Shown here one piece after another: positions 112-46,106 of a stretch of DNA of 52,138 nt. Source of the stretch: Girardia tigrina. Lineage: Eukaryota. The stretch spans positions 1 to 52,138 of the forward strand of contig MQRK01251997.1 in NCBI GenBank assembly GCA_001938485.1, in the 5' to 3' direction. Every line of letters starts with the position of its first letter. The stretch's first letter is position 1. The notes under the pieces were generated by a model, which worked only from the letters and a program-made list of their open reading frames with translations, did no database searches and had not been told where the DNA came from. The translations under genes and the position numbers were made by a program.

Positions 112-714
112 ATAATATATTAAATTTAAAGTATAATCTTGATCCATTGCAAGTTCATCAATAATTAAAAAAGGTTTCGAGTTTGACAATGTTCGTGAAA
201 ATGATCGAAATCCTCTTGAATATTGAACTAGAACTTTTTCGAGTTTATTCAGTCTGCTGGTAACAATAATTTTTGACCAAGAAGGTTCTATTGAAAGCAA
301 AGTATAAACATCTTTTGTCCAAGTTTGCATGAACATTATAAATTGAGGTTCTAGACCCAAAACTTTTGTATCTTCCCAATATTTGATTCTAAAATCATAC
401 TGTTGATTTGTCTTTAAATGTCGGATTATCACTGTTTTTTCTTTATTATTTAACATTATTTGTCCTAAATTCACACCTTTACTATAATGAAGTTGAAAGG
501 TTTCATTAGTCAAGCCTTGACATTGCCAAATTAATACATTGTAAGATGAATAGACTCGTAATTGATTTAAGAAAAGCAACTCAAATTTTGCTGGGAAATA
601 ATTGATATCCAAAGCTTGAAATAAAGGTAAAGAGAACCAACAAATCCAAGGGATAAGTGATAAATAATTAGTGTTTAGTTTTCCTTGATAAATTAATTTT
701 TTGTTTAAATTCAT
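112..714 (-). CDS. Retroelement ORF3 candidate: signal peptide plus two FN3-like domains, truncated by the LTR-A junction
   Basis: Part of ORF 106..792; ATG at 714 overlaps the end of the integrase. Hydrophobic leader YLSLIPWICWFSLPLFQA. Two repeats carry FN3 hallmarks (VLIW...FQLHY...IIRHLKTNQQYDFRI; VLVQY...IIDELAMDQDYTLNL). The stop codon is supplied by LTR sequence. Confidence 0.65.
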
Positions 715-884
715 TGTTTTGTTTCTTATTTTTGGATCGCAAATTATAACGGGACTCTTCAACTTTTTGAACCCTTTTACATCGATTAGCATGTATCACA
801 ATTATTTCAGCATTTTTATAATTAACAGCCTGCAATCTTACGTTTGTTGCTGTTATTCCACAAACACGATAAGGACCTTTATGT
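668..884 (-). mobile_element. Ty3/Gypsy integrase C-terminus (GPY/F module)
   Basis: KGPYRV...VIHANRCKR...RYNLRSK in ORF 668..940. Confidence 0.8.
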
Positions 885-3437: not shown

Positions 3438-4470
3438 TTAAGGTGTGGTAACTTGCATCGGTGTCTTGTCGTTTGACTCGCCATCATCGATGAAAAAGGT
3501 TGGTTTGACGTGTGATAGGTGTACGACCGTTACGTTGCCTTCTTTGGCGTTGTGTGAAAACAATTTCAAGATTTTGAACGGCCGTATGTATGATAAGACT
3601 GACTGGACTAAAATAAAGATATGAAATAAAGATATTTTGTGTCGTACACTGATTGGGCAAGTATTGTTTAAAATTATTGAAACCTTGCAATAAGAGTCAT
3701 TGTCTATTATTTCAAAGTGGCGTCCGGCTTTTTGAATGTCGGAGTCAATGAAGCGTTGTTCTGTTCTGTGAGTTCCAAAATGAATCGAATAGAATGGGTT
3801 GGTGATGCGTTGGTGGCTTAGCATGATATGTTGCGCCAACCCATAAGAGACGCAAGGTCGAGCCATCCCTGAGTTTTTTCTGCGAGAATTCGTAACGAGG
3901 TCTTTAAGGTGCGGTGGAAACAGTCAATGGTACTGTTAGCTTGAGGGTGATATGTTGAAGTTGAAAAGTGGGTGGTTCAAAGGTGTTCCACAATATCGTT
4001 AAAAAAACCGGTCTCGAACTGTCTGTCTTGATCTGAGATGAGGTGTTTTGGAGCACCGAAGCAGCAGACCAAAGAGATTAGAAATGTTTTGGTAATTGTC
4101 TCCATGTCAATGTTTCAGAGAGGGACTGCTTCAGACATTTTGGTCGCTCTGTCGATCATTGTCAGAAGGTATTGATAACCGTGGTCTGGTGGTAGTAGTC
4201 CAACGATGCCAATGTTGACCATATCGAACCGGATGAGTTGGGAAAATGGTATATTGGAGGTTTCGGTTTACGATTGGTTTTGTATTTCTGGTATGAGGTG
4301 CATGGAGTGACCCACAATCTGGGTGATGGAGGTTGTTGATGAACTAAAAAACTTGCTTGAGTATCGCATCGCGTAATATGGGTCTTGGTGATCCTGGTAC
4401 CAAGTAATCGAGGTAGATGCCCTCGGCTATGGATCTCTGTGGAAACTTTGTCTGGATTTCGACTTAGAGA
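3438..4470 (-). mobile_element. Decayed Ty3/Gypsy integrase
   Basis: Frameshifted IVGLLPPDHGYQYLLTMIDR...; C-terminal VVHLSHVKPTFFIDD. Same family as 16330-17060. Confidence 0.85.
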
Positions 4471-6246: not shown

Positions 6247-9200
6247 TCAATTGAGCTTTATTCCCATAAGACTGGCAACCCGGGACAGCTTACGATGAAG
6301 CACTGTGACCTCCCGGTCAAGTCCGAGGAAGAAGGGCATTTTTTCTTCATCCGATAATTGATAGTATTCTTTATACAGATCCTGAGACACAGCGACAGCC
6401 GACACAAAAACAATTAATTTAATTGACAACGATTGATAAATAATCGATAGAAAAAAAATTTTAATAATTATTTTGGCTGACATAAAAATTACATAATATT
6501 TATCATATTAAAAGAAAATATGACTTTATTTTTATAAAAAAATAACATTCATTTTCTTAACATAAAAAGAATAGTTTATTCTGTCGAGAAAAAAATCGAT
6601 CGTTGATCATTATCTCAAAACAAGATTTTTCTATTTGTTACCAAGAGCAATCCAATTATTTTAAAATTAGAATTGGTATTTAAATAAATTTAAGTAAGAA
6701 AATCAATGTTAATGATTGTTGAAAAGAAGTTCAGTATTAGATTTCTCTTTAAGATCTCGTTCCAGAATTCCTAAACTTTTTTAATATTGTTGGACACTCA
6801 TTTTCCATATAACATTTTGTGACATCTCGAGCAACAAATAAGAAAATATTAATTTCGAACAGGAATAAAATTTATGACATAAAAATTTTAGATTTTGTAA
6901 AATTTGTACACCTTTGGGCAGGACTTTAACAAGTGCAATTTAAGGGACAGCATTTTTACAAGTGTAATTTTAAGGGCAGAATCTTTACAAGTATAATTTA
7001 AAAGGAAATAAATAATTAAATTTTAATTATTTAATATAATTATTTATTTTAAATTATTTGAAATTTGACCAATTTCAGGTACTTTTTATGAACACACGGT
7101 AAGAAGCCTTTTAAATGTATGTTACCGAATTGATTTTATTCTTTAAATCAAGAGGTATATTACAATCAAGTGTTCTCATTTTCATCAATAAATGGTATGA
7201 ACTAAGAACTAATACTTAGGAGGAATAAGAACACCATACCGTTAATCATTAAGTTAACTTTGCGGAAACAGTTACAGATGTTTTTGGTTAAAATTATTTG
7301 TGTTGAGTGCAGAAGTTTTATAAGTGTGATTTTAGGGACAGGACTTAAAAAAGTGTAATTTAAGGGGCGGAAATTTTACAAGATCCAAAATTTTTTTATT
7401 GCAAAATTTTAATAATGGCCAGAAAATTATTTTATACTTACCAGGACATTTAAAACAATTAATTTTATTTTAGAAAAATATTATCAGTTAAACGTAACTC
7501 TGATGACGAGTTATACATTGAACAGAACACAAACGGATTTCATATGAAAAGACGATTGTAATTGCAATTTTGTGTAAAAACAATTAATATACCTTACGTC
7601 GCTGAAATTAATTACAGCTAAAACTTTTCATTTTCTACGTTTAGTATTGCATTTCTATCATTCGTAAAAATGTTTTTATTTTACTTTTTTAATAAATAAA
7701 CTTGCGAATATAGAAAAAATCACAAAAACATTTCAATATGTCTGGATAGTTTTAATTTGAAAAAAGTAACAAGAAAAAACATTTTGTTAGTAGTAACAAT
7801 TTCAAAAGATAAGAATAAAATAAATTTCAAACAATAACTAAATGTTTATATAATAACACAATTAAAACTAAATAATTAAGTGATATATTAGTCATTTTTT
7901 GTAAAAAAAATGTTTTGAGATTTTTCAATGTAATTTTTTTAATAAAACTTTAAATTTTTGATAATTTTTCGCAATAAATATATTTTTGGATTCCTTATAA
8001 ATTATAGCTTATCTTGCATTATTTTTGTAATGGGGAATTTTCAAAAAATATTGATTTTCAGGTATTGGTGTTTCTAACCTTTTCCTATAATTTTCAAACG
8101 AATTATAACAACTTTATTGATTTCTAGGGGTGAAAACAGCGCTCCGAAGACCGTGCTATACGAATTAGCAATCTGCATCAAACTAATCGGTCAGAAATTT
8201 TCTGGTCCGATCGATTAGTTTTGAATTTCCTTCTTATTCAAACAGTTTGACTATGCCATAATGATTCCTTTAACCGGTCGGTCATTTTGCCATCCGGATT
8301 GGATTGCTCAGACTTGTTCAATTTGTGAACTAAAAATATTGACTCTGAATCGATTATGATTTTTAATAATTTGATAAATTCAGAGTCGAAATCCAGAAAT
8401 CGGCACAATCCAATCCTTTTAAGTGGGACTTCGACCTCAAAAAATATGTATAATTCCATCTAGTGAAAATTTCAATGGACCACTGCAGAATTAATGGCGA
8501 TATATGAATTTTTTATATTTTAGTTTTTGTTTTAGCCACTTTTTTTAAAAATATTTTTGTTCTTTATCAAATTTAATTTTAAGATTAATCAGAAGATTAA
8601 AATATGGAATAGTAAAATAGTAATGATAATTAAAGTCATTTAAAATTGATTTGGTATTCCTATTTTGTAAATCAACCAATGATTTCAATACTATTAGATC
8701 AATAATGATTTCAAAAGATAAGAATTTGTTTTTTAGTATTTTAAAGTGATAAAAAAATCAACAAAGAATATTCATTGGTAATTTATTTTTTAATCATTTC
8801 TTAAAATAATTAAAATCGTTATTAATTGTAATTAAAAGTATTTTAAAAAAATTATAATTTCTAAGAAATTTTTAAGAAGAAATCAAATCTCACAGAAATC
8901 TCTCGTTCAGTTTTACTGGCTTCTGCGCGCGCTTTCAGTTCATCCCTCTTGTGTCGATACCTTTCATAGTATTCCATACATTCGACAAATCTCTCATACG
9001 ACCGATACGCCTCCTCAATGAATGCCTCACTGTCCACGTCCGTGAATCTGAGCTCTTCCACCGGATTCTCGTCTGGCTTAAACGAAATAGTGGTTGGATC
9101 GATAATCAAATATCGAAATGGAGAAGATGGCCGATTATCTTCTTTCTCTGGTTTCTTCTGACAATTATTTATATCAACGATCGATTCTTTTTTTATTGGC

Positions 9201-10201
9201 TTCGTGATATTTTTCACTACCGGTTTTTCTTTCGGTTCATTTAATCGATTATTGACTGCCTGATTATTAACCGATTGATTATTGCTCGATCGATTATTGA
9301 CTGACTGGTTATTGATTGTTTGGTTATTTATTGATTGATTATTGATTTTATTTGTGTTAATATTATTATTAGTTGTCGGTTTTTTAGGGATGGAATTTTG
9401 ATCAGATCGACGTACAGTATTTTGATGGTTGTTGGGCAACTGAAGGCAAATGTCAGGAAAATCAATTGCTATTTTCCGATCGGGCTCCCCGCTGAAAATC
9501 AATTTTCCGTTTTCTTGTCGAATATCGAAGTCCAAGTTGAAAACTGATTTTCGATTATTATGATCAATTATCGGCTTTATTGATTTTTGATTAGTGATTA
9601 TAGACTTTTGATCATTTATTGATTTTTGACTATTGGCCACTGATTTTTGATCAATTATTGTTTTTTTATCAGAAATAAATTTTTGATTATTAGTTATTGG
9701 TTTTTGATTAATTATTGATTTCTCTGAATTTTCTATTGGTTTTTTTTCGATTTTTACAGATTGATTGTCGGATTTGTTAATAGATTCGATAAATTGTCGT
9801 CGAATTTCAGCCTCATTTTGACGGAATTTTTCAATCATTTCTTCAGAAATGTTAAATTCGTTTGAAAGTTCTTTGATCGATTTTCCAGAATTCGATTTTA
9901 ATTTGTCCAAAATTGCAATTTTTTTAAGTGTAGGAAACGATTTTGTTACTTTTGGCCGTGTTGCAGATCGATACGATGATTCATCTGCATCGATTGGTGA
10001 TTCCTTTTTATCAATCGTTGATACGATCTTTGGTTTTTTCTTTTCTGGTTGATAATTATCAATGATTTGATTTACCGGACGCTTTTTTGATTGGTTCGCA
10101 CTCCTTTCAATATCATCGAAGATATTGACCGAATTCGATTTATTCTGATTTTTATTGCGATAATTCTCTTTCACAATGATTACTTGATCGACTCGACCCA
10201 T
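6247..10201 (-). CDS. Two-exon gene (10201-8894, 6381-6247; ~480 aa): CENP-B/psq-type HTH, low-complexity repeats, HMG-box-like C-terminus
   Basis: Intact 436-codon exon 1 ends TCT|GTGAGA; phase-0 acceptor TCTCAG|GAT at 6381. HTH: TLKKIAILDKLKSNSGKSIKELSNEFNISEEMIEKFRQNEAEI. The splice joins REIS|DLYKEYYQLSDEEKMPF. Confidence 0.8.
6890..7386. mobile_element. MITE with ~29-bp subterminal tandem repeats (Mutator/foldback-like), intronic
   Basis: Termini AGATTTTGTAAAATT / AATTTTACAAGATCC; AAAATTTT on both flanks; GGGCAG..TTTACAAGTGTAATTT repeats near both ends. Confidence 0.7.
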
Positions 10202-16329: not shown

Positions 16330-17060
16330 CTATGGAACCGTCATCATCTATGAAAAAGGCAGGTTTAGTGTTGGACAGGTGAAAAATTATTTCTTTGTTG
16401 TCTTTTAGTATTTAGGCATTATGGGAAAAGAGTTGCACGATTTTGAAAGGGCCGGTGAATGATGGAGCTTAACCGGATGCGTGTTGGCCTTTTAACCAAA
16501 GATATTTGGTGTTCTATAGTGATTTCGGCAGGTGCGGCTTTAAATTGTTATCTGCCTTGCAATAATAATCGTTCTCTAAGGATTCAAAGTGGAGTTTTGC
16601 TTTTTAGATGTCTGACTCGGATGTTGGGGCGTTCTGATCGATGAGTTCGGCGAGGAAACGTGTGGAATGACAGAATAAGGTCTGGGTGGGTGAATGGTTG
16701 ATGGAAGAACAAGATGTGTTGGGCCAACCTAAAAGTACGAAGGGTTACAAATCGATCCAACTATTGATTTTTTCGGCGAGGATTCGCATTGATGTTTTGA
16801 AAGTGTGGTGAAAACGTTCGATTGCACCATTGGCTTGGGGATTATATGCTGAGGTTTGGATATAAGTGGTGCCGACTATATCTTTGAATAAACCGGCCTT
16901 AAATTGTCTTCCTTGGTCGGAGATTAGATGTTTATGGGCACCGAAACGGCAGACCCACGTGGATAGGAACGTTTTGGTGATCGCTTCTGAGTCGATGTTG
17001 CGGAGTGGGACTGTTTCAGGCCATTTGGTGGTTCTATCGATCATCGTTAAAAGATATTAG
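16330..17060 (-). mobile_element. Decayed Ty3/Gypsy integrase
   Basis: IDRTTKWPETVPL...ISDQGRQF...SAYNPQANGAIERFHHTFK. Confidence 0.9.
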
Positions 17061-17081
17061 TAGCTGTGATTTGGTTGTAAG

Positions 17082-20439: not shown

Positions 20440-21541
20440 TAAACGGGAATAGTCGAGTTTGACTATGCCCACTCTATTTCTTATACAAAGTTTCTATGTG
20501 AGTGGGGTGTTGTAGATGAAAGAACGGTCTTAAACACTGTTACATCGGAACAGGTGGATATTATGGATACCGATAACATTCAAGGAGCCACATTACAAAC
20601 TTGCAACTTTGTGCATTCACGCAGCGTCGGCACCCCACATAATTGGGGATTTAGACATTCCATTGCAATAGAGATCACGGATAATTTGGACGATGAGGTT
20701 GTTGAAAAGATTAACGACATTTATTTGTCATCCTCACAGCAAGTTGCTGTTTTCACAGTCGAATTTTTCTTACAGGATGACGTACAAACCACTTTCTTTT
20801 AAATTTTCCATCTAAAAATAAATTCTGATTTTTAAGTTAGTGAAAAATCTGTAGCTCTGAGAGCGTCCTTTTTGAGGAAACATCTGTCTCTGGAGGATTA
20901 TCGATCACGACTTCAATTTTAGATGGAGAATTCGTCAAAGATATAGATAAAAAATACCACGAAGCTGCAATAACACTTCTAGATTATAATGAGAAAGTTT
21001 TTATTAATACTCGTGTATAAAGTTACTCGTGTTATAAAGTGATCGCCGAGTTACATAAGAACTTGTATGGTAACATCCTTATGGGTCACGATCTGCAAAT
21101 GGAAATCAGGGCCTTGTCCATACCCCCTCACACCTTGTTAGGTATTCAAGATACGACAACAGCGAAAGTTTTTGATTTATTCTCCATAGAGAAAAAAGGG
21201 AATTTATGTGGACTCCGTACTTTAGCTTACACGTGTTGCGAAAGAATATAAAAGTTTAGGACAACTCTTCTAGGGAAGACACACACGCCTTGTTACAAAT
21301 ATACCGCAAGTTTGAACGCAATTGGGTAGATACAATATCAGCCACAAGTGCGGCGCAACTCTTTCAGAATTCGTTACCTCAAACAAATGGCCCACCATCT
21401 TCTACCGTAAGTAAATGGCTAGAAACCAATTACTGGAAGATGCTTAATAATCATTACTCGAATAATTTTAATTCATCTTCAGTTTCCTCCTTCCACTCAG
21501 CAAAAGAGCAATTAGATACACACGATGCTGAAGAGAGATAA
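20440..21541 (+). pseudogene. Decayed ~1.1-kb coding-like sequence of unknown identity
   Basis: Successive same-strand ORF pieces (20554, 21039, 21290), few stops, GC above background. Confidence 0.4.
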
Positions 21542-21682: not shown

Positions 21683-22068
21683 TATTAAGAACACCAATCT
21701 GACTTTTCATATTTTTATTTACACAATTTTGATTGTCCTTAAGACAATCATTGTCAAAACTTTCGTACGAGTGCATTCCAACTAAATTCATTAAAAAATT
21801 GATTCTTATTATTTTAAGTAAATAGAGAAATAAATAATTTATTAAAATATTTACTCAAAACTTATTGGATAAAAATTCAAATAAATATTAATTATTTAAA
21901 AAATAATTATTCGATTTATTTATTAAAAATTAATTAACTTATTTAAAATTATTTTAAATCAAAAATAAATTTATACATTACATATCAAATATTAATCATC
22001 CATCTGTGTAGGAGAGACACAATTCCAAATCAACATTCAAACACAAAACATTCAAAATATTCCACACA
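21683..22068 (-). mobile_element. Solo LTR, family A (diverged)
   Basis: TGTGTGGAATATTT...GTTCTTAATA; flanks CGGTC / CAGTC (4/5 TSD). Confidence 0.8.
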
Positions 22069-22519: not shown

Positions 22520-25500
22520 TCAAGCTAAACTCTGCAGCGCCTTTTGGTACGATTGATAGATTTCCTCGGGGAATGAAGTTTTCTCTTGATCAACAGCGGG
22601 CAGTGACGATTTGTCGAGACCGGTGCTGAAATAACGATGATAGAGAGCGTCCAGAGTAGTTATTCGATCAGCCGGTACATAAGTGAGCATTTTCTGTATT
22701 AAAACACACGTATGAATCAATAAATCACGATTTAATAATCATAATTCAATCGATAATCCAATAATAAATTCAAATCGATATAATAATATATCAATTTATC
22801 TATGAAATTCGTCTTTAAATCTATATAACTCCAACATAAATTCACAAGTAGGATGCAGTTTGAATAAGTCAAAATAAAATTCATTTCAGTATTCATTTTT
22901 CATGGATATGTCGTCAGAAACAGTAAATCGCGAATAAATTATTCGTTTATTTCAAGAAAAACCACAATCAAGTTAGAAAAATTAGAAAGAAGAAAGGGTT
23001 TTTCGTGTACATAGAATGTGAAGAAACTAGAGGCTCTGTTAGAGAGAAATCGTCGTCTATCAAATCGAAAACTGGCGGTAAAGACAAACTGTAGCGAGAA
23101 AACAGTTCGGAAAATTAACAGTCTGTGGATGTAAAACCGTATAAAGTTCAAATAGTACCAGACCAGAACGCTAGCAAGAACGTAAAGGCGCAGCAGCGAG
23201 CCAGAAAGTTGAAATTTGGTTTTCTTGCGAAGAAAAAATGTTGCATTATGGATAATGAGACTGATGCACTTTGTGAGTTTTCCCAACTACCCGAACAAGA
23301 ATTGTACTGTGCAACTAAGAGTAGTTGAAGAAAAATTTAGAAGTAAGAAAAATCTAAGTTTAGCAAAAAATCTCTTGTTTGGCAGGCTATATGTGGATGG
23401 GGAGAAAGGAGTAAATGCTTTGTCATATCTGGCACAATAAACACAGAAGTCTATGTGAATGAATGCTTGCAAAAGCGTTTATTACCATTCATAATTCAGC
23501 ACGGTGGCCTTACTTTCTTTTGGCCGGAACGAAGACAATAACGTCGATTTGGTGCAAAGAGAGGCAAACCAACCAAATTGTCCAGAGCTTCGCCCAATCG
23601 AAAGATATTGGGCCCTGGTAAAAAGGTAATTAAAGACTACAAACAAAATGGCACAGACGTAGATTTTCGGAACAAGTGGAATAATGCAGTCAAAAACGTG
23701 ACAGAAATTACTACTGCAAGTCTAATGGCAGGCATTTCGCAAAAGCTCGCAGAATTTATTAAAAAAAGAATCTTTCTTAGCTTACTAAAATTATTTTGAA
23801 TTAAACACATTTTTCAAAACAGTCGGTATTTTTTCAATCAAAAAAATGGTTTTGAAGTTGAGGATTTTAAAGTTAGTAATATTTTTCGCACTCAGTCCTT
23901 AAAAACGAAATTGTGTAATTCTTCGTGTAGCTAAATGGATATTTTCGACATTATTACAAGGAATTATCCGTATGAAGTTTGATCAAGGATCTATTATCCA
24001 ATGGCGGCTATAGGCATGTTGCTGAGAAAGCATCACCACTACCCAATTATTCCTGAAACTGTATCTATGGATGTTGAAGCCCTCGATGTCAATGAGACAA
24101 GTCAAAGTAACCCGAAATCTTCTCTCAAACGTCTCTCAAGAGTTGAAAATGACATTAATCAACAGAGAAATAAGTCAATTGCAGTTTTTTGCAACTCAAA
24201 TCAATTTAAAAAATTTTTGAAAATAAAATTTTCTAACGCGAAATTAATGCCGCATTTTTACACAGTTTATTTATCGGATTTTCAAACCGTTCCTGATGTT
24301 GTAGTGAGCTGAAATTTCACATACATGCTCATTTCAATGGCATTAAAATTTTCAAAAATCATTTTAATAATACTCAATGATTTTGGGAAAATATTAATCG
24401 AATTTTTAATATTATGTAAAAATCAGGTGAACATCGACATGTCGGGTACATGACAGCATTTATTCCACTGTGTCACACGTTACCAATAATCGGTCCCCAT
24501 TCTTTCTTCGTTCGATTTTCCGACAAAATTGATATTCAAAACCTTGTCGGTACCGGTAGAAAAAATAGTGCCCATTTTCTAATACCTGCGGTGCATATAA
24601 ATTTTACCACTGCGATATATTCCTAACAGTGAACACCGCAAACGAATACTTCATTTGAATTGAACATTTGGGTTAGGAATTTTTGGGTCAACTTTATACA
24701 AGAGGTAAGATATTTATTAAGAACATTTAGACAAGTCGCGTTTGAACTGTTATTACAATCACATTTAGAGTCATTATGACTCTCAGAAAGTCTTTCATCG
24801 TTTGTCATCCTTCTAAGTGGTTTTCTTAATTCTATTTTTAATCATGATTATTCGAACAATTTTTCTAAATTATTTTTTAAAATATTTAGCCTCTAAAAAT
24901 ATTAATTAAAAAAAATAATAATTTTTACACTTTTTGAATAAATCTTAAAATAATAAAAATGTTATCAAATTATAAAAATTCATTTAATTTAAATTTTACT
25001 ATAAAATATTAATTTTTAAAATTAAAAATATGAACTTATAAAATGATTATTTTAATTATGTTCGAATAGTCAATCACTTTAAATTTAAATAAAAATACAA
25101 TTTCCATCTGGGTGGGAGAATCACAATTCTAAATTCAGCATACTTAAATCAACATTCAGCATCACCACATTTACTCATTCAAACAATTTTAAATATTCCT
25201 CACAATATTGTCAAAATGTTCAATTCCAATGTATTGGGTGTACAACTAATTAATTTCGTATTTTTTTGTTAAAAAACCATTTATTTAAGTATAAAAGTGA
25301 AAAAATATTTTATTCAAAATATTGTCCATTGGAAGCGGCAACTTTTTCCCATCTGTCAGACAATTTATGGATTCCATCCCAAAAAAACTTCTCATCTTTT
25401 GCGCTGAGAAAGTCATCAAGCCATTTTTTAATACCTTCAACATTGGTGAACCGTATTCCAGAAAGGTGATTCTGAATCGACCGAAACAAGTGGTAATCAG

Positions 25501-27392: not shown

Positions 27393-27442
<50 letters not shown>

Positions 27443-30400
27443 NNNNNNNNNNNNNNNNNNNNNNNNNNNNNNNNNNNNNNNNNNNNNNNNNNTATATATA
27501 TATATCGGTCAAATAAAATAATTTTTGAAATTAAATTAAATAAGACACTTACACCGATTAAATCAATACAATCATCATCAGTAATAGAGGGCGCTAGTTG
27601 CTCCTTCAATCTATATCGCCATACTGGAAAAGCCGGGTTCCATCCGGTCAAGTGATGTAACCCTGCCCAGGACTGTTCGTTAGGGGTGCCCAGCACCTTG
27701 AAGATTGAGAATAGCTGGTCTATCTCAGAGTCGCCTTGAAACAATGGTCGCCCTGAGCTCATTTCCACGACAATACACGCCACACTCCACACATCGATTG
27801 GACACGAATAACGCGACGCACTTAACAATATTTCAGGCGCCCGGTACCACAAAGTCACAACCTGAAGTATCCAAAAATATTCTTAATAACAAACAAAACC
27901 CATGCTTACACACGCCATACATCAGTATATCTTCGCTACAAGAATGATTTATAAATTTGTTTATATTTTTGAAATATTTTTTTATAAAAATAAATCCATT
28001 TTAAATAAAATCTCAAAAGATTTTTAACTATTTTTGATTGAAAAATATTTTAAAGCATTAAATTCTAGAAAGTATTGTTTTGGATATTTTTTACTAATTT
28101 ACAGGGTTGTCAACTAAGTTTTTTTCCGATAATAACAAACTATCAAATATAATGTCCAATCATTCATCATCATCAGCCAAGTGTTCAAAATAGCAGCCAT
28201 TAGTGTCAATGCAACGTTGCCAACGTCCTGGCAACTTATTTATACAATTCTTGAAGAAGGATCCGGCCTTGGTGTTCAACCACTCCTGATGTTTCTCCTG
28301 AACCTCCTCAGAATCTGCACCTTTCAAAGCTCCTTTCATTGGTGAAAATAGATAGTACTGAAGGAGCCAGATCCGGTGAATAGGGGGGATGTGGCAGGAT
28401 GTTTAGATGCATTTCGGCAATCTTGGACTGGGTGAGATGAGCCGTATGTGGACAAGCGTTGTCCTGAAGAAGGTACAGAAAACCGTCCGTGGTTTTCCGT
28501 CGTCGTTTTACCAGGATAGCTATCTTCAGCTTTTCCAGCAGTACAGTAGTCTGTTACCGTCATGGTTTTTCCATTTTCTAACACATCCATCAAGATCACA
28601 CCTTTCGAATCCCAGAAGACGGTAGCCAGATGCTTCTTTGTAGTTAACCTCACTTTGGATTCTGCAGCAGGCGCATCGCCACTTCCACGCCAAGATTTGT
28701 GAGTGTATGAGGATGTATTCTCCCAGAATACCCACATCTCATCCACAGTCACTATACGGTGCAGGAAATTGTTTCTGCGGTACATAGCCAGCAGTTTTTC
28801 ACACAGAGACACTTTTTTCCTTAGCAGCTTCTGTTAAAACATGTGGAACCCACACGTTGGCGAGGTAACGTTTGTTCATTTTCATGAGATTCTGACTCAC
28901 TGCTTCGTGGCCAATTCCAATTTCTTGGACAATGAATCTCGTTGTGGCAAATTTGTTTTCCTCTAGAATTCGTTCTATATCTGCAGCCACCTCATAAGAA
29001 GGTCGCCCACTGCGAACTTTTTCATTTACCTCGCAGTTAACGTTCTCGAATTTCTTTACCCAGTTAAAACATGTACGTCACGTAGTTGTTTCTTCTCCCA
29101 GTGTGTTGTTTATATCTTTTGCAATGTCTACAGCTGATAATTTACGATTCCAACAATAGAAAATAAGCTTTCTCACGTCTTTTCTGTTGAAATTCATCGA
29201 TTACTTTGAAAGATGGCAAAAATATTGTAATATCGTATTACTCTAAATAAACAATTTTTAATTTATTGCATTTTTATTATGTAAACTGAAATAAATATTA
29301 ATAAACTTTTGATAGTTATAATGTGTATTAATCATACAATATACACACCAAATTTGGATTTCTTAGCGGTCATAGATCTCCAGATACAACGACAAATGCA
29401 TTGGAAAAAACTTAGTTGACAACTCTGTACCAGGTATGTAAATATGATTTTGTTTGGTAACTAAAACTCGTTTATTAGATAAAAATTTTATTTGATTCTC
29501 ATTACTACTAAATGTTTATTCCCAACTGTTTAGTAAGTTGTGGATTGCACACCAAAAAATGTTGCTAATTTAGACCAAACCATTATCAAGACATTATATT
29601 AAGTGAAGCACTGCTCAGATAGTGTATTCCATGATGCAAATGATAATCGAATGGAGCCAAGTTTAGTGAGTAACCAGCTGGCGAAAGTATTTTTCAAAAA
29701 GTATCTCATTTGTTTCCATCACAAATTGTATTGTGTGACGTTGTCTTATCATGTATTATTATTACCTTTTTGTGTTATTGCATTTTTTTCACATTGTGGT
29801 TGTTTTTTCACACAAAGCTTGTTTCAAATCAATTATTAATTGTCTGTAGCGTTAAGTGTTACCAGTTTCGTCCTGTTTCAGCAGATGATAATAGATCCCA
29901 CTCTTACGATACCACCAAGCACAGAAGATTTGGCCATACAGACGATGTTAAAGTCAGAGCCTTGAATAACCCATGATCTTTGGTGAACTTATTTTTCGAT
30001 TCCTGATCGTTTCCATGGATTTTTAACGAATGGATATATATACTTTCCCCATGGCTCAGGACTTATATTACTGACGTCATAATTCCTACTCAAAATCGTT
30101 AGACCCCCAAAGCACGGTAATTTACCAAGACAGTGCTTTCTGTAGGCTTCGACAGTATTTGATCTAATTCTGCAGCAATTTTCTTTAAATGGTAACAGGA
30201 AATTAATGCTTTCCGATAATTAATAGATTTCAACAAAGCCAATGTATTGACGGTAAATAGATTTACAGCTAGCGTCCAGTTTCATATTTACAGACCTGGT
30301 AATTGGTGCCATATTCCATAAAAATTCCACTGAAAATTATGTTAAGAAATTTATTAAAAGATCATTAAAAATTAATTTTATGTCCTTAAATTAAGTAACT

Positions 30401-33400
30401 TCAAATAAAATTAAGTTTAATAAACATTTGAAAAATTCTTTATTTGTTTATGGAACTAACGAATAATTTGAAATACATTAACAATTGATTTCTCAGTGCA
30501 AAGATATACGTAATGTAGCTCTAATTGTCGTTAATTTCCACCTCGTGCGTAAGCGGTTTCACAGGAGCCCCATATGTCCTCGCGAGCCCAAAATCCGCGA
30601 TTTTGATTATTTGCTTGTTAATATCTATTAACAGATTTTGGGGCTTCAAGTCACGGTGAATGATACGTCTCAAGTGGCAATACAAGAGTCCTTGTAAGAT
30701 TTGATAGGTGTACCGTTTCAATAGCATCTCATCAATCGCACCCGGATTATTATCCAGATATCTTCGTAAATCCATACTTAAAAACTCAAATACCAAATAT
30801 AGCTTTCCCTTTTCCATCATCGTTTGATTTAAACTGTACAGAAAATTAGATGAAATTTTATTTTAAGCTTTATAAAATTCTTTATTGCTGCCCAAAATGA
30901 ATGATTTTATCTGTCATATTTAGAATTTGTTTTTTTTTCATTTGATCAACACAAATTGTTTTACAAATAAAAATTTATTTCGATTTACTTGAGATTGACT
31001 TTTATTGTGCCATGAAATATATTATAAGTTATTCATAATATATAAGCAACCCTTTGTAAAAATACCAAAATAATTAATAGATAAAAATCTGAGGCCCATT
31101 GGATGATATTCTTAGAATTGAACACGACAAAACACAGTCACTTTATTCCCTTTTTCACTTGTATTAGGTGTATAACTTAGTTATTTGGATTTTTTTGCAG
31201 AACAGACAAGTTTATTTATATGACATAATAAGTTTTATTCTAATCAAAATATTTTCCATCGTTAATTATGACTTTCGACCATCTTTCAGGCAAATTATGA
31301 ATTCCATCGAAATAAAAGTTTTGGTCTTTTGATGCAATCCATTGTTCCAGCCATTTTTTATATGTTCCTGGTTTCTGAAGTGCTGTTCCCGAAGAGCGCT
31401 TTGCATTGATCGGAACAGATTATAATCTAATGGGGCACAATCTGGTGAATAGGCAGCATGCGGTAGAATTTCCCATTTAAGTGCTTCCAACGTGTTTTTT
31501 ACTTGTTTTGCGACATGTGGCCGAGCATTGTCATGGAGCAAAATCACTGTGCGCTGTTTTTTGGCTGGAATAGGACGTTTTTCCTTCAATACATTGTTCA
31601 ATTTCATTAACTGTTGTTGCTAACGTTCTGCATTAACAGTTTCATTCGAATTCAGCAGCTCATAGTACAGTACACATTTCTGATCCCACCAAATGCACAA
31701 CATAACCTTGCTTCCATGAATGTTTCTTTTTGCTGTTGACGTGGACGGTTCGCCGGGATGAACCCACGATTTGTTGCGTTTAGAGTTAACATAATAAATC
31801 CATTTTTCATCTCTAGTCACAATTTTATGCACAAACGACCATCTTCGTTGTCTTGTAAGCAATGAATTGAATATCAGTAATCGACTTTCAATGTTGGCTT
31901 GATTCAATTCATGTGGTATCCATTTTCCTTCTTTTTGAATCATNNNNNNNNNNNNNNNNNNNNNNNNNNNNNNNNNNNNNNNNNNNNNNNNNNGTTTACT
32001 TATGGCTGCTTGAGTAACATTTAACTGTTTTGCAAGCTCTTTCTCTGTTTGAGTAGAATCTTCCTTCAGTAATGATTCCAAATCTTCATCTTCGAATCTT
32101 TTTGGTTGACCTCTTTGTCACTTGTGTCGAAATCTCCACTTTTGAAGCGTTTATATCAGTTCTCGCAAGTCTGTTGAGTTGGTGCATGTTGACCATAAGT
32201 TTCTTCAAGAAGCCGAAAACTGTCTGCAGCTTTTTTCTTTTGATTAAAGCAAAACAATAGTACTTCCCACAAATGCTGTTTTGTTGGTATGAAAGTTGTC
32301 ATGCTAAAACGTGATTAAAAATATGTTTATGACGCATTTAAGGTCAACGACCTACTTAATTTTAATGCCTCGATTTCAGCACTTTAAAAATCTGTACGTA
32401 CGACTGCAAAATAATGCTTATTACAAAGGTTACACCATCTCTTAGAAAATCCAAAAAAACTAAGTTATAAACCTAATACTACCGCTGAATGTCCATTTTA
32501 AATTAAAAGTATGGTTTTAGTTAATAATTACATAAACACAGACTTTCTAAAACTCAAAACTTTAATTTTTATTCATAAATAATTGGTTTTCAGAGAAGAT
32601 TAAGTGTTAAAGAAAAAATCTTAATTATTTTTGATAAACAAATAATGATTAATAATTTAAAATATAATTTTAAGTCTTATAAACGCTAATTTGATATGGT
32701 TTTTTTATTGTGAGGAAGGTTTTAAGTTTTTTGTTGTTTTATATTTTGCATGTTGTATGTTGATTCGGATGGTTGATTGATATTTTTCTTGGATTCCTAC
32801 TAATTGAAAACAATTTAATTTTTAAGTAAAAAGATTTACAATATTTTTCAAATGTAATAATTAAATTTGAATGTAATTTAAAATTTTAATTTATTAATTT
32901 AATTGGTACTTATTTTAAAATATTTAGATTAAATTTTAACTAATTAGAATCTTTATAATTAATATTAATATTTTTCATTTATGCACAAAATTATGATGAA
33001 TTTCAGAAATATATTAATTAAGAAAAATGTCGAAAAGCGAAAGTGGTTTGAATAATTGTTGTAATGACAATTCTGTTTGTGATATTAATAAATGTTCAAA
33101 TGTTTGATGTTTTAATACTTATAATTTATATCTCGTGTTAAAATACAATCAATTGACATGTTTTAATGTTCCATATTATATCAACAGAAATCATAACTTT
33201 TTTGACAAAAATTTAAATGAAGACCAAAATGATAGAATAAAAATAATTAACTATACTTTATCGAAATATTATTGCCTAATAATAAATAAATATTCGAATT
33301 AATGAATTAATATTTTGATAAAGTACAATTAATTACTTTTATTATTTTTGATCTCTTGATATATTTGTGTATTGGTCCCCACCGAAATTTTAAAATATAT

Positions 33401-36984: not shown

Positions 36985-38230
36985 ATGTTTTTTGGTTTCC
37001 TCTTTGGGCCTCCCATCTCTTTCAAAAATGGTATTGAGCTTATAGGCTCTTTAGATGGTACACCCAAACCAAATAAGTCTATAAGCTCCCCGATAGGCCT
37101 TCTACGAGGACGTCAGCCTTTCGCTTCCGCGCACGCTTGGATATCCAGTCTGAAACGATCATTCATGGATAGTAGTCCCATGATTCTGCATCCCTTTAGC
37201 TCTGTACGTGGACTTTATACATCCGAGAAACGGACATCTAAAGGTTCCTTTAACAGTTAGATCTGTAAGGCGGTAGTTCAGATGGGTTTTTAAAGGACTA
37301 GTTTTTGACTCTCCTGTCGAAGCAGCATTCAGATCGAAAATTGATACTTGAGTTGCGTTGTCTTCTGGTATCGCGTTCAGTGGTTGATTCCCTTCTTCTG
37401 ATTATCTGGATTGATTAGTTCTGCTCGGAAATATTTGGTCTAATTGTTTTTCTTCAATATTGTGCACTGTTTTGAGATGTCTATTTTATCTTTATATTTC
37501 GTCTCATAGTCTTTTCTTACTTTGCTTAGAATTTTAACCGTGTCGCACGGTGTTTTCTCATCGATCAGCCCGACTTTTTTGTACCCTTATTATATATTTG
37601 TAAGTCAACTCTGTTTTTCGAGTCAGTCCTCGAGCACTCATGGTCTTTACTTGTTTGTAAAATTGGTTTTTCTAATTTTATTGCTTCTCGACGGTTTTCT
37701 CGGACAATACTCATCGGACTATTTCTTTTACAGAGACACAATACATGCATCTGTGTCTCTGTACCTGTTAGGTTGGGAAATATCTTCCATTCTAAATCAA
37801 AACAAATTAAAAACTTGCCAAAATTTATTAATCTACAACAGTTTAAATTTGTTATTTAAACAAATTTACTTTTTTTATTTTCTTTTTTTTATTTCTATTT
37901 TCTATTATTTTTTTTAATTTCGATTATAATTCGAAATTTTTAAAAACCAAAATTCTTATTTCTGAAAATTAAAAAATTAACAACAACACTCTCTTACAGT
38001 ACCTTTGCCACACAATCCACAGAGTGTTTCATTGCGTGGTTTTCTCTGTTTATAATTAGTTGGGAGACTGTTGATTCGTGCGCTGTGAAAGAATCACCAT
38101 TCTTTGTTTGTACTGTTTTCATTGTACATGACACCAACACTATCCTTGTTGTCCGCAATCGCAACTGTAGAGATTCCAACTATCCCTTGTTTGCTCAACT
38201 TTGTGAATTTTAGTTTTGTATACAAACGAT
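36985..38230 (-). mobile_element. RLE-clade non-LTR retrotransposon fragments: CCHC knuckle and restriction-like endonuclease, followed by an N-terminal C2H2 finger
   Basis: Removing the solo LTR gives FFHSARINSLPT...CGLCGKGTETQMHVLCLC...RVDL...IDEKTP...KY; this is followed by FRCPFLGC...NHGTTIH. Confidence 0.8.
37766..37998 (-). mobile_element. Solo LTR (family B)
   Basis: Perfect 5-bp TSD GTACC at 37761-37765 and 37999-38003; TG...CA ends. Confidence 0.92.
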
Positions 38231-42448: not shown

Positions 42449-43349
42449 GGTTATCAAAAAAGTTGAAGACAAAGAATTGAAGGCATTACTCGATCAAGAT
42501 CCATGTCAAACTCAAGACGAACTTGGAAAAGCATTGGAAGTCACTCAACAAGCCATTTCTAAACGTTTAAAAACAGCCGGATACATTCAGAAACAAGGAA
42601 ATTGGGTGCCACACGAATTGAAGCCGAGAGACGTTGAGAGACGATTTTGCNNNNNNNNNNNNNNNNNNNNNNNNNNNNNNNNNNNNNNNNNNNNNNNNNN
42701 NNNNNNNNNNNNNNNNNNNNNNNNNNNNNNNNNNNNNNNNNNNNNNNNNNNNNNNNNNNNNNNNNNNNNNNNNNNNNNNNNNNNNNNNNNNNNNNNNNNN
42801 NNNNNNNNNNNNNNNNNNNNNNNNNNNNNNNNNNNNNNNNNGTGTGCTGTACTATGAGCTGTTAAAATCGGGCCAGACGATCACGGGAGAGCTATACAGG
42901 CAACAATTGATACGTTTGAAGCAAGCAATAGCTGAAAAACGGCCAGAATGGGCGACCAGATATGAGAAATTGATTTTCCATCATGACAATGCTTGGCCAC
43001 ATGTTGCAGTACCGGTCAAAAATTATTTGGAAAATGCCGGATGGGAAATTCTACCTCACCCGCCTTATTTCAGACATAGCTCCTGATTACCACTTGTTTC
43101 GGTCGATTCAGAATCACCTTTCTGGAATACGGTTCACCAATGTTGAAGGTATTAAAAAATGGCTTGATGACTTTCTCAGCGCAAAAGATGAGAAGTTTTT
43201 TTGGGATGGAATCCATAAATTGTCTGACAGATGGGAAAAAGTTGCCGCTTCCAATGGACAATATTTTGAATAAAATATTTTTTCACTTTTATACTTAAAT
43301 AAATGGTTTTTTAACAAAAAAATACGAAATTAATTAGTTGTACACCCAA
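42449..43349 (+). mobile_element. 5'-truncated mariner (twin of 25234-26119), spans a gap
   Basis: WVPHEL and HDNA motifs; TIR ...TTAGTTGTACACCCAA followed by TA. Confidence 0.95.
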
Positions 43350-44576: not shown

Positions 44577-45644
44577 TGATTGGTTTTAATATTGGTTTCT
44601 AATGAAGCACACTGATCACCTCTCCTTGTGATCGTGCGTCCTCGTTTCCCTGTTCGTCTCCGGATCTTCTTTTACCTCTAGAATAATCTCTTGTTATATT
44701 CTCTTCTCTTCTATCAGACATTTCCGATCTCCTGTCTATTTCATCATCTCTGTCGTCTAACTCCGCCAAGTGTTGTTTCTTATTCATATATGCCGGTCGT
44801 TCTCTATATCTCTGATTAGAATAATCTCACCTGTCGTTCCTACGATTTCTATTATTGTCCCATTTCCGTTGGTCACGTTCTTTAAACCTATTTGGGTTTT
44901 CATAACATTGTGTTCGTAGATGTCCTCTTCTTTGACAGTGACTACACTTAACGTTCGGACATTCTCTTCTAACATGACCTTCCTCATGGCAGGCCCAACA
45001 AATTATTTTTCTGACTTTATAGTTTCGACTTGTACCGTCTCTCTTTACATCGTCGTTCCGTAGTTTTGGTGTTCTTCTTTTATGTTCCACCGTTTTCCAA
45101 TCGTTTTCTTTCCTTGTGTTATATGCTGCAATCGGTGAATTTCTTTTCTTTTTCCCGTATTCATACATCCTCATTTGTATATTTTCGATTTCCTCTGCCT
45201 TTGTTACACCTCAAATCGCTATCTCTTGATCGACGTTATCATCATCAATCATATTAGCATAGACCAATTTTGATAGTTCTTTCTTACCCAACTTTTTCTC
45301 TACTAATTTTTCGATTATCTCATCTGCTTTGCGGAACGCAAGTGACGGGTCACCACAACCTACTCTTAACTCAATGAGATCTTTCATCAAATCCAAAATA
45401 GATTTCTCTTTTGAAAATGCTGCTCGAATTTTCTCTTTGCAAGTACTCCCAGGGGCCTTCTCGTATCTCAGAATCGCATCTGGAGTCAGGTAGGGTGTTA
45501 CCAGTAGGATTTTTCTCTCCTTTGATAATCCCATAATCTTTGAATACCTGTTAAAACTTATCAGGAATTCTTCTAACTTGTGCTCGGATCCATCGAATGT
45601 TTCTGGACCTTTGATGTTCGGAGTCATGTGGTGTGAAGTCGCCA
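44577..45644 (-). mobile_element. Ty3/Gypsy gag with two CCHC knuckles; frameshifted and truncated before the protease
   Basis: PETFDG, CWACHEEGHVRREC, CSHCQRRGHLRTQC. Confidence 0.9.
45635..45644 (-). promoter_or_regulatory. Primer binding site (TGGCGACT..., tRNA-Arg-like)
   Basis: TGG immediately follows the LTR terminal CA. The tRNA assignment is from memory of Arg tRNA 3' ends. Confidence 0.65.
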
Positions 45645-46106
45645 TGTTAAGAGAACTCACACATTTGACAGAAGATTTATTACATTCACAATTTTTATCA
45701 TCTTTATGATAATAAATATTATTGCTTTCACTAGAATCCATCAATCAATTTTCAATATCTCCCATTATAATCTGAACTAACTTGATAAGACTATTTTATT
45801 TAAAAATATTTAATTTAAATTTGATTGGCTAAAATAAAATATTTTTATAGTCATTTTAAACATTAATTTGATTTTAATAATTTAAAAATTTACAAAAATA
45901 AAATCATTAAAATTATTTAAAAGTTTCAATAATAAAAACTAAAAATTTGAATATTAAATCTAAATTTAAATAAATTAGTTTCAGATTATAAAAAATTAAA
46001 TATTGATAATCCATCTGGTTAGGAGAGGCACAATCCCAAATCAACATACAACATTTGAACATGCAAAAACTACACAAAAACATCCACACACCAAATATTC
46101 CTCACA
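45645..46106 (-). mobile_element. 5' LTR, family A (462 bp)
   Basis: TGTGAGGAA...CTCTTAACA, followed by the PBS and gag. Confidence 0.92.

Follow-up and report, generated by a model that had tools for sequence, protein, structure and literature searches.

The stretch of DNA analysed here, referred to as the window, comprises the 52,138 nucleotides of contig MQRK01251997.1 of Girardia tigrina (GenBank assembly GCA_001938485.1), numbered along the forward strand. Its first 2.8 kb contain, on the minus strand, a broken integrase gene (positions 668–2795) and, behind it, an incomplete post-pol open reading frame (ORF), which we call ORF3 (positions 112–714). ORF3 borders directly on the end of a long terminal repeat (LTR) that lies on the opposite strand (positions 1–111). 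Together, bases 112–2795 of the minus strand are what remains of the 3' part of a dead LTR retroelement of the Ty3/gypsy type, in which ORF3 occupies the position where other elements have an envelope (env) gene and encodes a leader followed by domains that are predicted to resemble fibronectin type III (FN3) domains.

The integrase gene has lost its 5' end, with the zinc-binding domain and the start of the catalytic core, and whatever would precede that core in a Ty3/gypsy element, from gag through protease and reverse transcriptase to RNase H, is absent from the window copy. The interior of the gene is broken by three stretches that are foreign or additional. One is a solo LTR belonging to the family of the LTR at positions 1–111, the second is part of an unrelated repeat, and the third is short. 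No stops or frameshifts were seen inside the retained pieces. All of them match, in order and with about 60–78% identity (tblastx), the unbroken carboxy-terminal half of the integrase on a related contig, L003, and the region from 668 to 2795 is therefore taken as one broken integrase gene. The largest piece is recognised by the Pfam family rve (E = 8.5e-8; 32.8 bits, with a cut-off of 32.6) and by rve_3. Of the catalytic triad, the retained part contains the second Asp and also the Glu, as judged by eye from the translation, the first Asp belonging to the missing 5' part. An open frame at positions 668–940 of the minus strand contains a GPY-type tail with the motif ...RYNLRSK..., this tail being the carboxy-terminal module of the Ty3/gypsy lineage. 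For the integrase half on L003, the best match in the PDB is Ty3 Gag-Pol (PDB entry 7q5b, 1.8e-11), and the next-nearest integrases, with about 40% identity, have chromodomains. Judged by its sequence, the integrase is of the Ty3/gypsy type, in agreement with an earlier note that had described a Gypsy element here from the letters of the DNA alone. A same-orientation LTR pair belonging to the element was not found, its own LTRs being absent from the window.

The open frame containing ORF3 spans positions 106–792 of the minus strand (228 amino acids), and ORF3 itself runs for 201 codons from a likely ATG at position 714 to the LTR. Its start overlaps the end of the integrase gene (positions 668–714), the two being read in different frames, just as the earlier note had observed for the integrase tail with its stop at 668 and a second open frame. 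ORF3 contains neither an internal stop nor a frameshift and needs no intron, which also agrees with what had been noted before; at a GC content of 28%, the chance of 201 stop-free codons is about 2.5e-8. The product begins with a signal-peptide-like leader (positions 610–714), which has a basic start, a core of 12 hydrophobic residues with a mean Kyte-Doolittle value of 1.72, and a small residue at position -1 of the putative cleavage site ...PLFQA|LD. This leader, previously recognised by its hydrophobicity, has a comparable counterpart at the aligned place in two related contigs (L001 and L002); L003 is without an in-frame leader. Two repeat units of about 67–97 residues follow. FN3-like domain 1 (positions 313–609) is complete and is assigned from the predicted sandwich, the Foldseek matches and an alignment to the cellular protein P0003, all described below. 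FN3-like domain 2 (positions 112–312) ends before its last strand, where the LTR ending at position 111 interrupts the gene. Comparison of domain 1 with domain 2 gives a z-score of 5.5, and one in 2000 shuffles scored as high.

When 1.84 billion representative proteins were searched exhaustively with HMMER for relatives of the 228-residue product, only four clusters were returned. P0001, encoded at positions 167–1399 of contig L001, is a full-length protein of 410 amino acids (E = 4e-50), the first 196 residues of which are 46–49% identical to the ORF3 product of the window. P0002 has 133 amino acids, and P0004 has 230, with an identity to the window product of 22%. The fourth, P0003, is a cellular multi-FN3 protein of 1484 amino acids with twelve Pfam FN3 stretches (fn3, 1e-121). 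P0001, P0002 and P0004 come from three different metagenome samples and are 22–49% identical in the ORF3 protein. On all three metagenome contigs, none of which is longer than 2.8 kb (L003 measures 1.2 kb), a homologous integrase tail stands directly before ORF3, and integrase and ORF3 are adjacent in each of the four copies that reach this region (the window, L001, L002 and L003), in the position just downstream of pol that the earlier note had pointed out. The details of the junction differ: in L001 the two genes overlap by 8 nucleotides, in L002 they form a single frame, and in L003 the integrase tail is located about 100 nucleotides upstream. The three closest further integrase relatives (L004–L006) end before the ORF3 slot or are decayed there, and are neutral on the linkage. 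When JGI metagenome contigs were scanned for patterns of the ORF family and, afterwards, of the integrase, no further copies emerged; nor did any when IMG/VR was scanned for the ORF family. Word-indexed protein searches, started from P0001 or from the alignment of the family, returned already-known members only. Because the same integrase tail and ORF recur on three independent metagenome contigs, ORF3 is assigned to the retroelement and is, by sequence comparison, linked to its integrase across diverged relatives. The same recurrence, on three further contigs from three samples, contradicts the one-off fusion that the earlier note had named as a possible refutation of its proposal.

ORF3 is under purifying selection. 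The ratio of nonsynonymous to synonymous differences per site (pN/pS) between ORF3 and its relatives is 0.46 (bootstrap range 0.37–0.57), 0.57 and 0.71, and it is lower than 1 in at least 98% of the bootstraps for each pair, in a comparison of the kind the earlier note had suggested. For the integrase tail, the ratio is 0.17–0.24. These figures are rough, the synonymous sites being near saturation, and they point to a gene that evolves faster than the integrase yet is constrained. Genes in the env slot usually evolve faster than the integrase, but under constraint. In an alignment of the integrase ends and ORF starts of the four copies, no shared splice acceptor is obvious.

The full-length P0001 consists of a leader, forming a short helix in the AlphaFold2 model, three domains of about 90–99 residues each, a Ser/Thr-rich stalk of about 45 residues, a transmembrane helix and a tail of 21 residues. 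Domain 1 resembles domain 3 with a z-score of 6.2, and the protein contains six N-x-S/T sequons. The anchor is located by 19-residue windows with Kyte-Doolittle values above 1.6, starting at residues 357–375, and in the AlphaFold2 model it is part of a helix formed by residues 351–393; the corresponding region is absent from the truncated copy in the window. The cytoplasmic tail contains no recognisable signalling domain. With this layout, the full-length ORF3 product is predicted to be a type I membrane glycoprotein. The earlier note had asked whether further copies share several features; integrase–FN3 adjacency and a transmembrane anchor (the latter in P0001) are indeed found, and a fusion domain and a 3' LTR are not, no recognisable LTR being present in the 410 bp that follow ORF3 in L001. 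In the single sequence of P0001, the carboxy-terminus has a Ser/Thr-x-hydrophobic end resembling a class I PDZ-binding ligand.

The two domains of the window copy were modelled by AlphaFold2 with a mean predicted local distance difference test (pLDDT) value of 69. The block of domain 1 has values of 62–77 and the strands of domain 2 have values of 66–80, with seven or eight strands in each complete domain. When this model was compared with the PDB using Foldseek, all of the top 50 matches were tandem-FN3 proteins (E-values from 2.7e-6 to 6e-5, probability 1.00), among them DCC, Tie2, neogenin, contactin, tenascin, NCAM, fibronectin and L1CAM. The alignments have TM-scores of 0.3–0.4, because the angle between the domains differs, and sequence identities of 8–16%. 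The P0001 model gives the same kind of list, with cytokine-receptor ectodomains at the top (TSLPR/IL-7Ralpha and IL-2Rgamma). At the level of sequence, a genuine FN3 repeat of P0003 can be aligned in register to both window repeats, with 25–33% identity. The E-value of 4e-13 obtained for P0003 was discounted, because five nearly identical repeats add up in it; one domain by itself contributes about 33 bits. A profile of eight stacked domains, when compared with the PDB, matched the FN3 domains of CD45 (E = 0.0013), ELFN1 (0.13) and tenascin (0.22), all in register. Support for FN3 from sequence comparison alone is marginal. We conclude that the ORF3 domains resemble FN3 in their predicted fold, whereas their sequences have diverged strongly. 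The two repeats with an FN3 pattern reported in the earlier note are thus recovered as tandem FN3 sandwiches when checked by structure prediction and Foldseek, in the way the note had recommended. An FN3 module of cellular ancestry is most likely. The further claim, that it had been captured from a host gene, did not gain support: a specific donor among cellular genes was not found, and the best cellular match is a generic multi-FN3 protein with 25–33% identity over one domain.

P0001 was also examined for the features of a membrane fusogen. It has no furin-type site (R-x-K/R-R), only three cysteines are present in its ectodomain, and its AlphaFold2 model contains no helices outside the leader, anchor and tail, residues 234–358 being of low confidence. 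A viral fusion glycoprotein is not among the Foldseek matches listed (top 50 each for the PDB and BFVD); those listed from BFVD consist largely of FN3 proteins from phage tails and giant viruses. P0001 fails both the homology and the hallmark tests for an env protein of the F-type or gB-type. A fusogen, which the earlier note had allowed the FN3 protein to be part of, is unsupported by the evidence listed here, and it is fair to read the product as a surface or attachment protein.

According to a 2026 survey (PMC13524379), metazoan gypsy elements carry env genes of the F-type and the gB-type. Env-carrying Ty3/gypsy elements of that survey are similar to the element described here in their type of integrase, in having a post-pol gene for a protein with a signal peptide, an ectodomain and a carboxy-terminal anchor, and in that env and pol have remained linked over long divergence. 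However, errantivirus-type env proteins are viral fusogens, those of the F-type belonging to class I and those of the gB-type to class III; they have trimeric helical cores and fusion peptides or loops, often together with furin sites, whereas the ORF3 protein, of about 410 amino acids, is predicted to be an all-beta, tandem FN3-like protein and matches them neither in sequence nor in fold. LTR elements of bdelloid rotifers (Vesta, TelKA and others; PMC5408684) show likeness in having captured diverse ORF3s, some of them encoding small membrane proteins unlike known env. The rotifer ORF3 types are a paramyxovirus-F-like env, short proteins with two transmembrane segments, a GDSL esterase and a DEDDy exonuclease; neither "fibronectin" nor "FN3" occurs in the text of that paper. 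In the MDG1 group of gypsy elements, sORF2 is likewise a membrane protein encoded by the element and independent of an envelope, which has been proposed to serve cell-to-cell passage; it is a FAST-like small membrane protein, showing that non-classical surface proteins can serve transmission (PMC11952523). The ORF3 protein differs from it in having a folded ectodomain of about 330 residues, and no homology is implied. Finally, the tandem-FN3 receptors of cells (DCC/neogenin, Tie2, contactins, NCAM, cytokine receptors and CD45) share with ORF3 the predicted fold and the order of leader, FN3 domains, stalk, transmembrane segment and tail, but the likeness in sequence is marginal, and ORF3 is intronless, overlaps the integrase and is carried along by a retroelement. 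In full-text searches, no paper was found joining ORF3 or env-like genes of retrotransposons with fibronectin type III, in line with the earlier note, the author of which knew of no gypsy env built from FN3 domains. An FN3-array gene in the env slot has, by these searches, not been described before; post-pol membrane-protein genes in LTR elements are already known.

On balance, we regard it as probable that ORF3 is a conserved, element-borne gene for an FN3-array membrane protein, placed after the integrase and acting as an env analogue for attachment. Its protein would be produced from a subgenomic, probably spliced, message, such as other post-pol genes use. It would then enter the secretory pathway and be displayed on the surface of the cell or of the particle, where the FN3 array may act as a binding or adhesion module that aids the passage of particles between cells. 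The product would in that case be an attachment-type analogue of env rather than a classical membrane fusogen. A more far-reaching proposal, that a whole Ty3/gypsy lineage uses a cell-derived type I membrane glycoprotein with three FN3 domains as its surface or transmission protein, instead of a fusogen derived from a virus, is offered only tentatively.

Several observations weigh against the interpretation of ORF3 as an attachment protein in the env slot. The known family consists of four fragmentary copies, in which nothing but the position after the integrase marks the env slot, and a complete element with gag, reverse transcriptase and its own LTRs was not seen among them. ORF3 looks slightly damaged in two of the relatives, L002 having one in-frame stop, and L003 lacking an in-frame leader, probably because of one frameshift or a low-coverage error. 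The alignment used for the AlphaFold2 models is four sequences deep (the window and three relatives), and the model of P0001 has a mean pLDDT of only 48, with values below 35 for the third domain and the stalk. Pfam scores for the ORF3 product of the window stay below threshold, both, on domain 1, for fn3 (E = 0.19; 12.4 bits, with a cut-off of 25) and, on domain 2, for Fn3_ELFN (E = 0.012; 15.9 bits, with a cut-off of 27). Pfam scans of P0001, P0002 and P0004 found no family, and profiles of the whole length of the family gave no significant FN3 match when compared with PDB sequences.

The main rival explanation is that ORF3 is a captured receptor-like or adhesion-like gene, carried by the element as a decoy, as a modulator of host signalling or defence, or as a block to re-entry; large DNA viruses use captured receptors in this way. 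The cytokine-receptor ectodomains matched by P0001, together with the match to CD45, fit such a role, as do the lack of fusogen features and the varied capture of non-env ORF3s by LTR elements (PMC5408684). However, neither a specific cellular donor nor a ligand-binding motif was found, the short tail carries no recognisable signalling domain, and both the position of the gene and its overlap with the integrase are typical of env genes. The attachment reading and this rival both fit the data, and we consider the rival rather unlikely. Class II fusion proteins have three beta-rich domains, of which domain III is Ig/FN3-like, followed by a stem and a carboxy-terminal anchor, and the three beta domains, stalk of about 45 residues and transmembrane anchor of P0001 recall this layout, in a protein whose model is poor in the third domain and the stalk. 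That ORF3 encodes a divergent, all-beta fusogen resembling those of class II, with domains that merely look like FN3, is nevertheless improbable: no class II protein is among the listed Foldseek matches from the PDB and BFVD, the ectodomain with its three cysteines has no evident hydrophobic loop, and the internal repeats are sequential, which speaks against the class II architecture with its interleaved domains I and II.

Two further explanations are less likely still. In a window that is a dense nest of transposons, chance juxtapositions are common, and a host FN3 exon could have come to lie beside a decayed integrase as a one-off junction. This is very improbable, because the integrase tail and ORF3 recur together on three contigs from three samples at 22–49% identity, their frames overlapping in like manner, and no free-standing cellular homologue was found among the 1.84 billion representatives. 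More improbable still is that ORF3 makes no product, being open merely by chance or a pseudogene that died long ago. The window copy is indeed truncated and part of a dead element, and two relatives have one defect each; but the chance of an open frame of this length, already small for the window copy, is 7e-16 for the 410 codons of P0001, pN/pS remains below 1 in nearly all bootstraps of every pair, and the leader, the domain hallmarks and the anchor form a coherent whole.

As env genes of metazoan gypsy elements, surveys so far describe only fusogens derived from viruses and, more recently, a small FAST-like protein. With a conserved FN3-array glycoprotein in the env slot, retroelements would have a further class of surface protein, one that seems to derive from cells, and LTR elements would have more ways of gaining an interface with the cell surface than those known so far. 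If the more far-reaching proposal holds, this would represent an independent, non-viral route to an "envelope", apart from the F-type, the gB-type and the FAST-like sORF2. The family also provides a concrete sequence with which invertebrate genomes can be searched; it is easily missed in annotation because it is nearly absent from public protein sets, with four clusters in 1.84 billion.

The LTR next to ORF3 is represented in the window by its last 111 nucleotides (positions 1–111 of the forward strand), the remainder being located off the window. These bases are 91% identical to positions 45752 to 45645 of the minus strand, which form the gag-proximal end of a second LTR at 45.6–46.1 kb. The latter, our reference copy, is about 460 nucleotides long (from 46106 to 45645) and is followed by gag-like ORFs, the second of which contains CCHC knuckles (zf-CCHC, 2.4e-6); together they form the 5' portion of an LTR element on the minus strand (positions 44827–46106). 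Downstream of the LTR at positions 1–111, no primer-binding or gag-like sequence was found. As this LTR is inverted with respect to ORF3, it must be a separate insertion, either a 3' LTR or a solo LTR, of which the end is seen here. It shortens ORF3, from which about the last half has been removed. Its orientation rules it out as the 3' LTR of the element that carries the integrase and ORF3. The earlier note was therefore right that an LTR end adjoins the ORF at position 111 and cuts it off, but this LTR is foreign and inverted. The two LTRs located 1.8 kb apart were also considered as the ends of one small element, which was rejected: the first is not followed by primer-binding or gag-like sequence, and the DNA between them matches, in antisense, the integrase and ORF3 of L003 and L001. 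The LTR that truncates ORF3 and the solo LTR elsewhere in the integrase/ORF3 element both come from the LTR family of the element at 44827–46106. Downstream of the element at 44827–46106 on the minus strand, that is at lower coordinates, a mariner-type insertion is present at about 42.5–43.3 kb.

On contig L001, about 410 bp downstream of ORF3 and on the same strand, an ORF of 322 amino acids (positions 1813–2778 of the forward strand) encodes an exonuclease of the DEDDh type, similar to ISG20 and REXO (Pfam RNase_T, 7.8e-7; ISG20 in the PDB, 3.8e-7). Its GC content is 0.40, that of the element being 0.28, and a host gene and transposon cargo are candidate readings. A piece of 56 amino acids with 39% identity to this exonuclease is encoded at positions 21033–21200 of the window (forward strand), near LTR-like fragments at 21842–22040.

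The remainder of the window is AT-rich, with 20–40% GC in steps of 2 kb, and is packed with pieces of transposons of invertebrate type, including a mariner-type transposase, Tc1-like and integrase-like remnants, LTRs and gag ORFs, between which exons of a CDK-like kinase are also present. Scans for Rfam families and transfer RNA genes gave no match in the window. An unclassified repeat copy at 37005–37289 has a minus-strand frame with a C2H2-like zinc-finger motif; another piece of this repeat, 74% identical, is one of the insertions within the integrase gene. Another integrase-like stretch, GC-richer and heavily decayed, is located at 3440–4330 on the minus strand and is 67% related to positions 16498–17079, the two belonging to a different, more ancient family of retroelements. 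Fragments of mariner-type transposase are located at 28336–28812, 31266–32081 and 42477–43273 (Pfam Transposase_1, 7.5e-12, and DDE_3), two of the three being interrupted by runs of N. An intronless ORF of 446 amino acids (positions 8861–10201, minus strand), rich in Asn, Gln, Lys and Ser and containing short tandem repeats, belongs to no Pfam family and gave no match in an exact look-up. The kinase exons, of CDK1/2-like type, are found at 27397–27858 and 22520–22720 of the minus strand (Pkinase, 2.1e-13, the exons being scanned singly). They are kilobases apart, separated by an intron filled with transposons, and are probably part of a host gene that harbours much of the nest.
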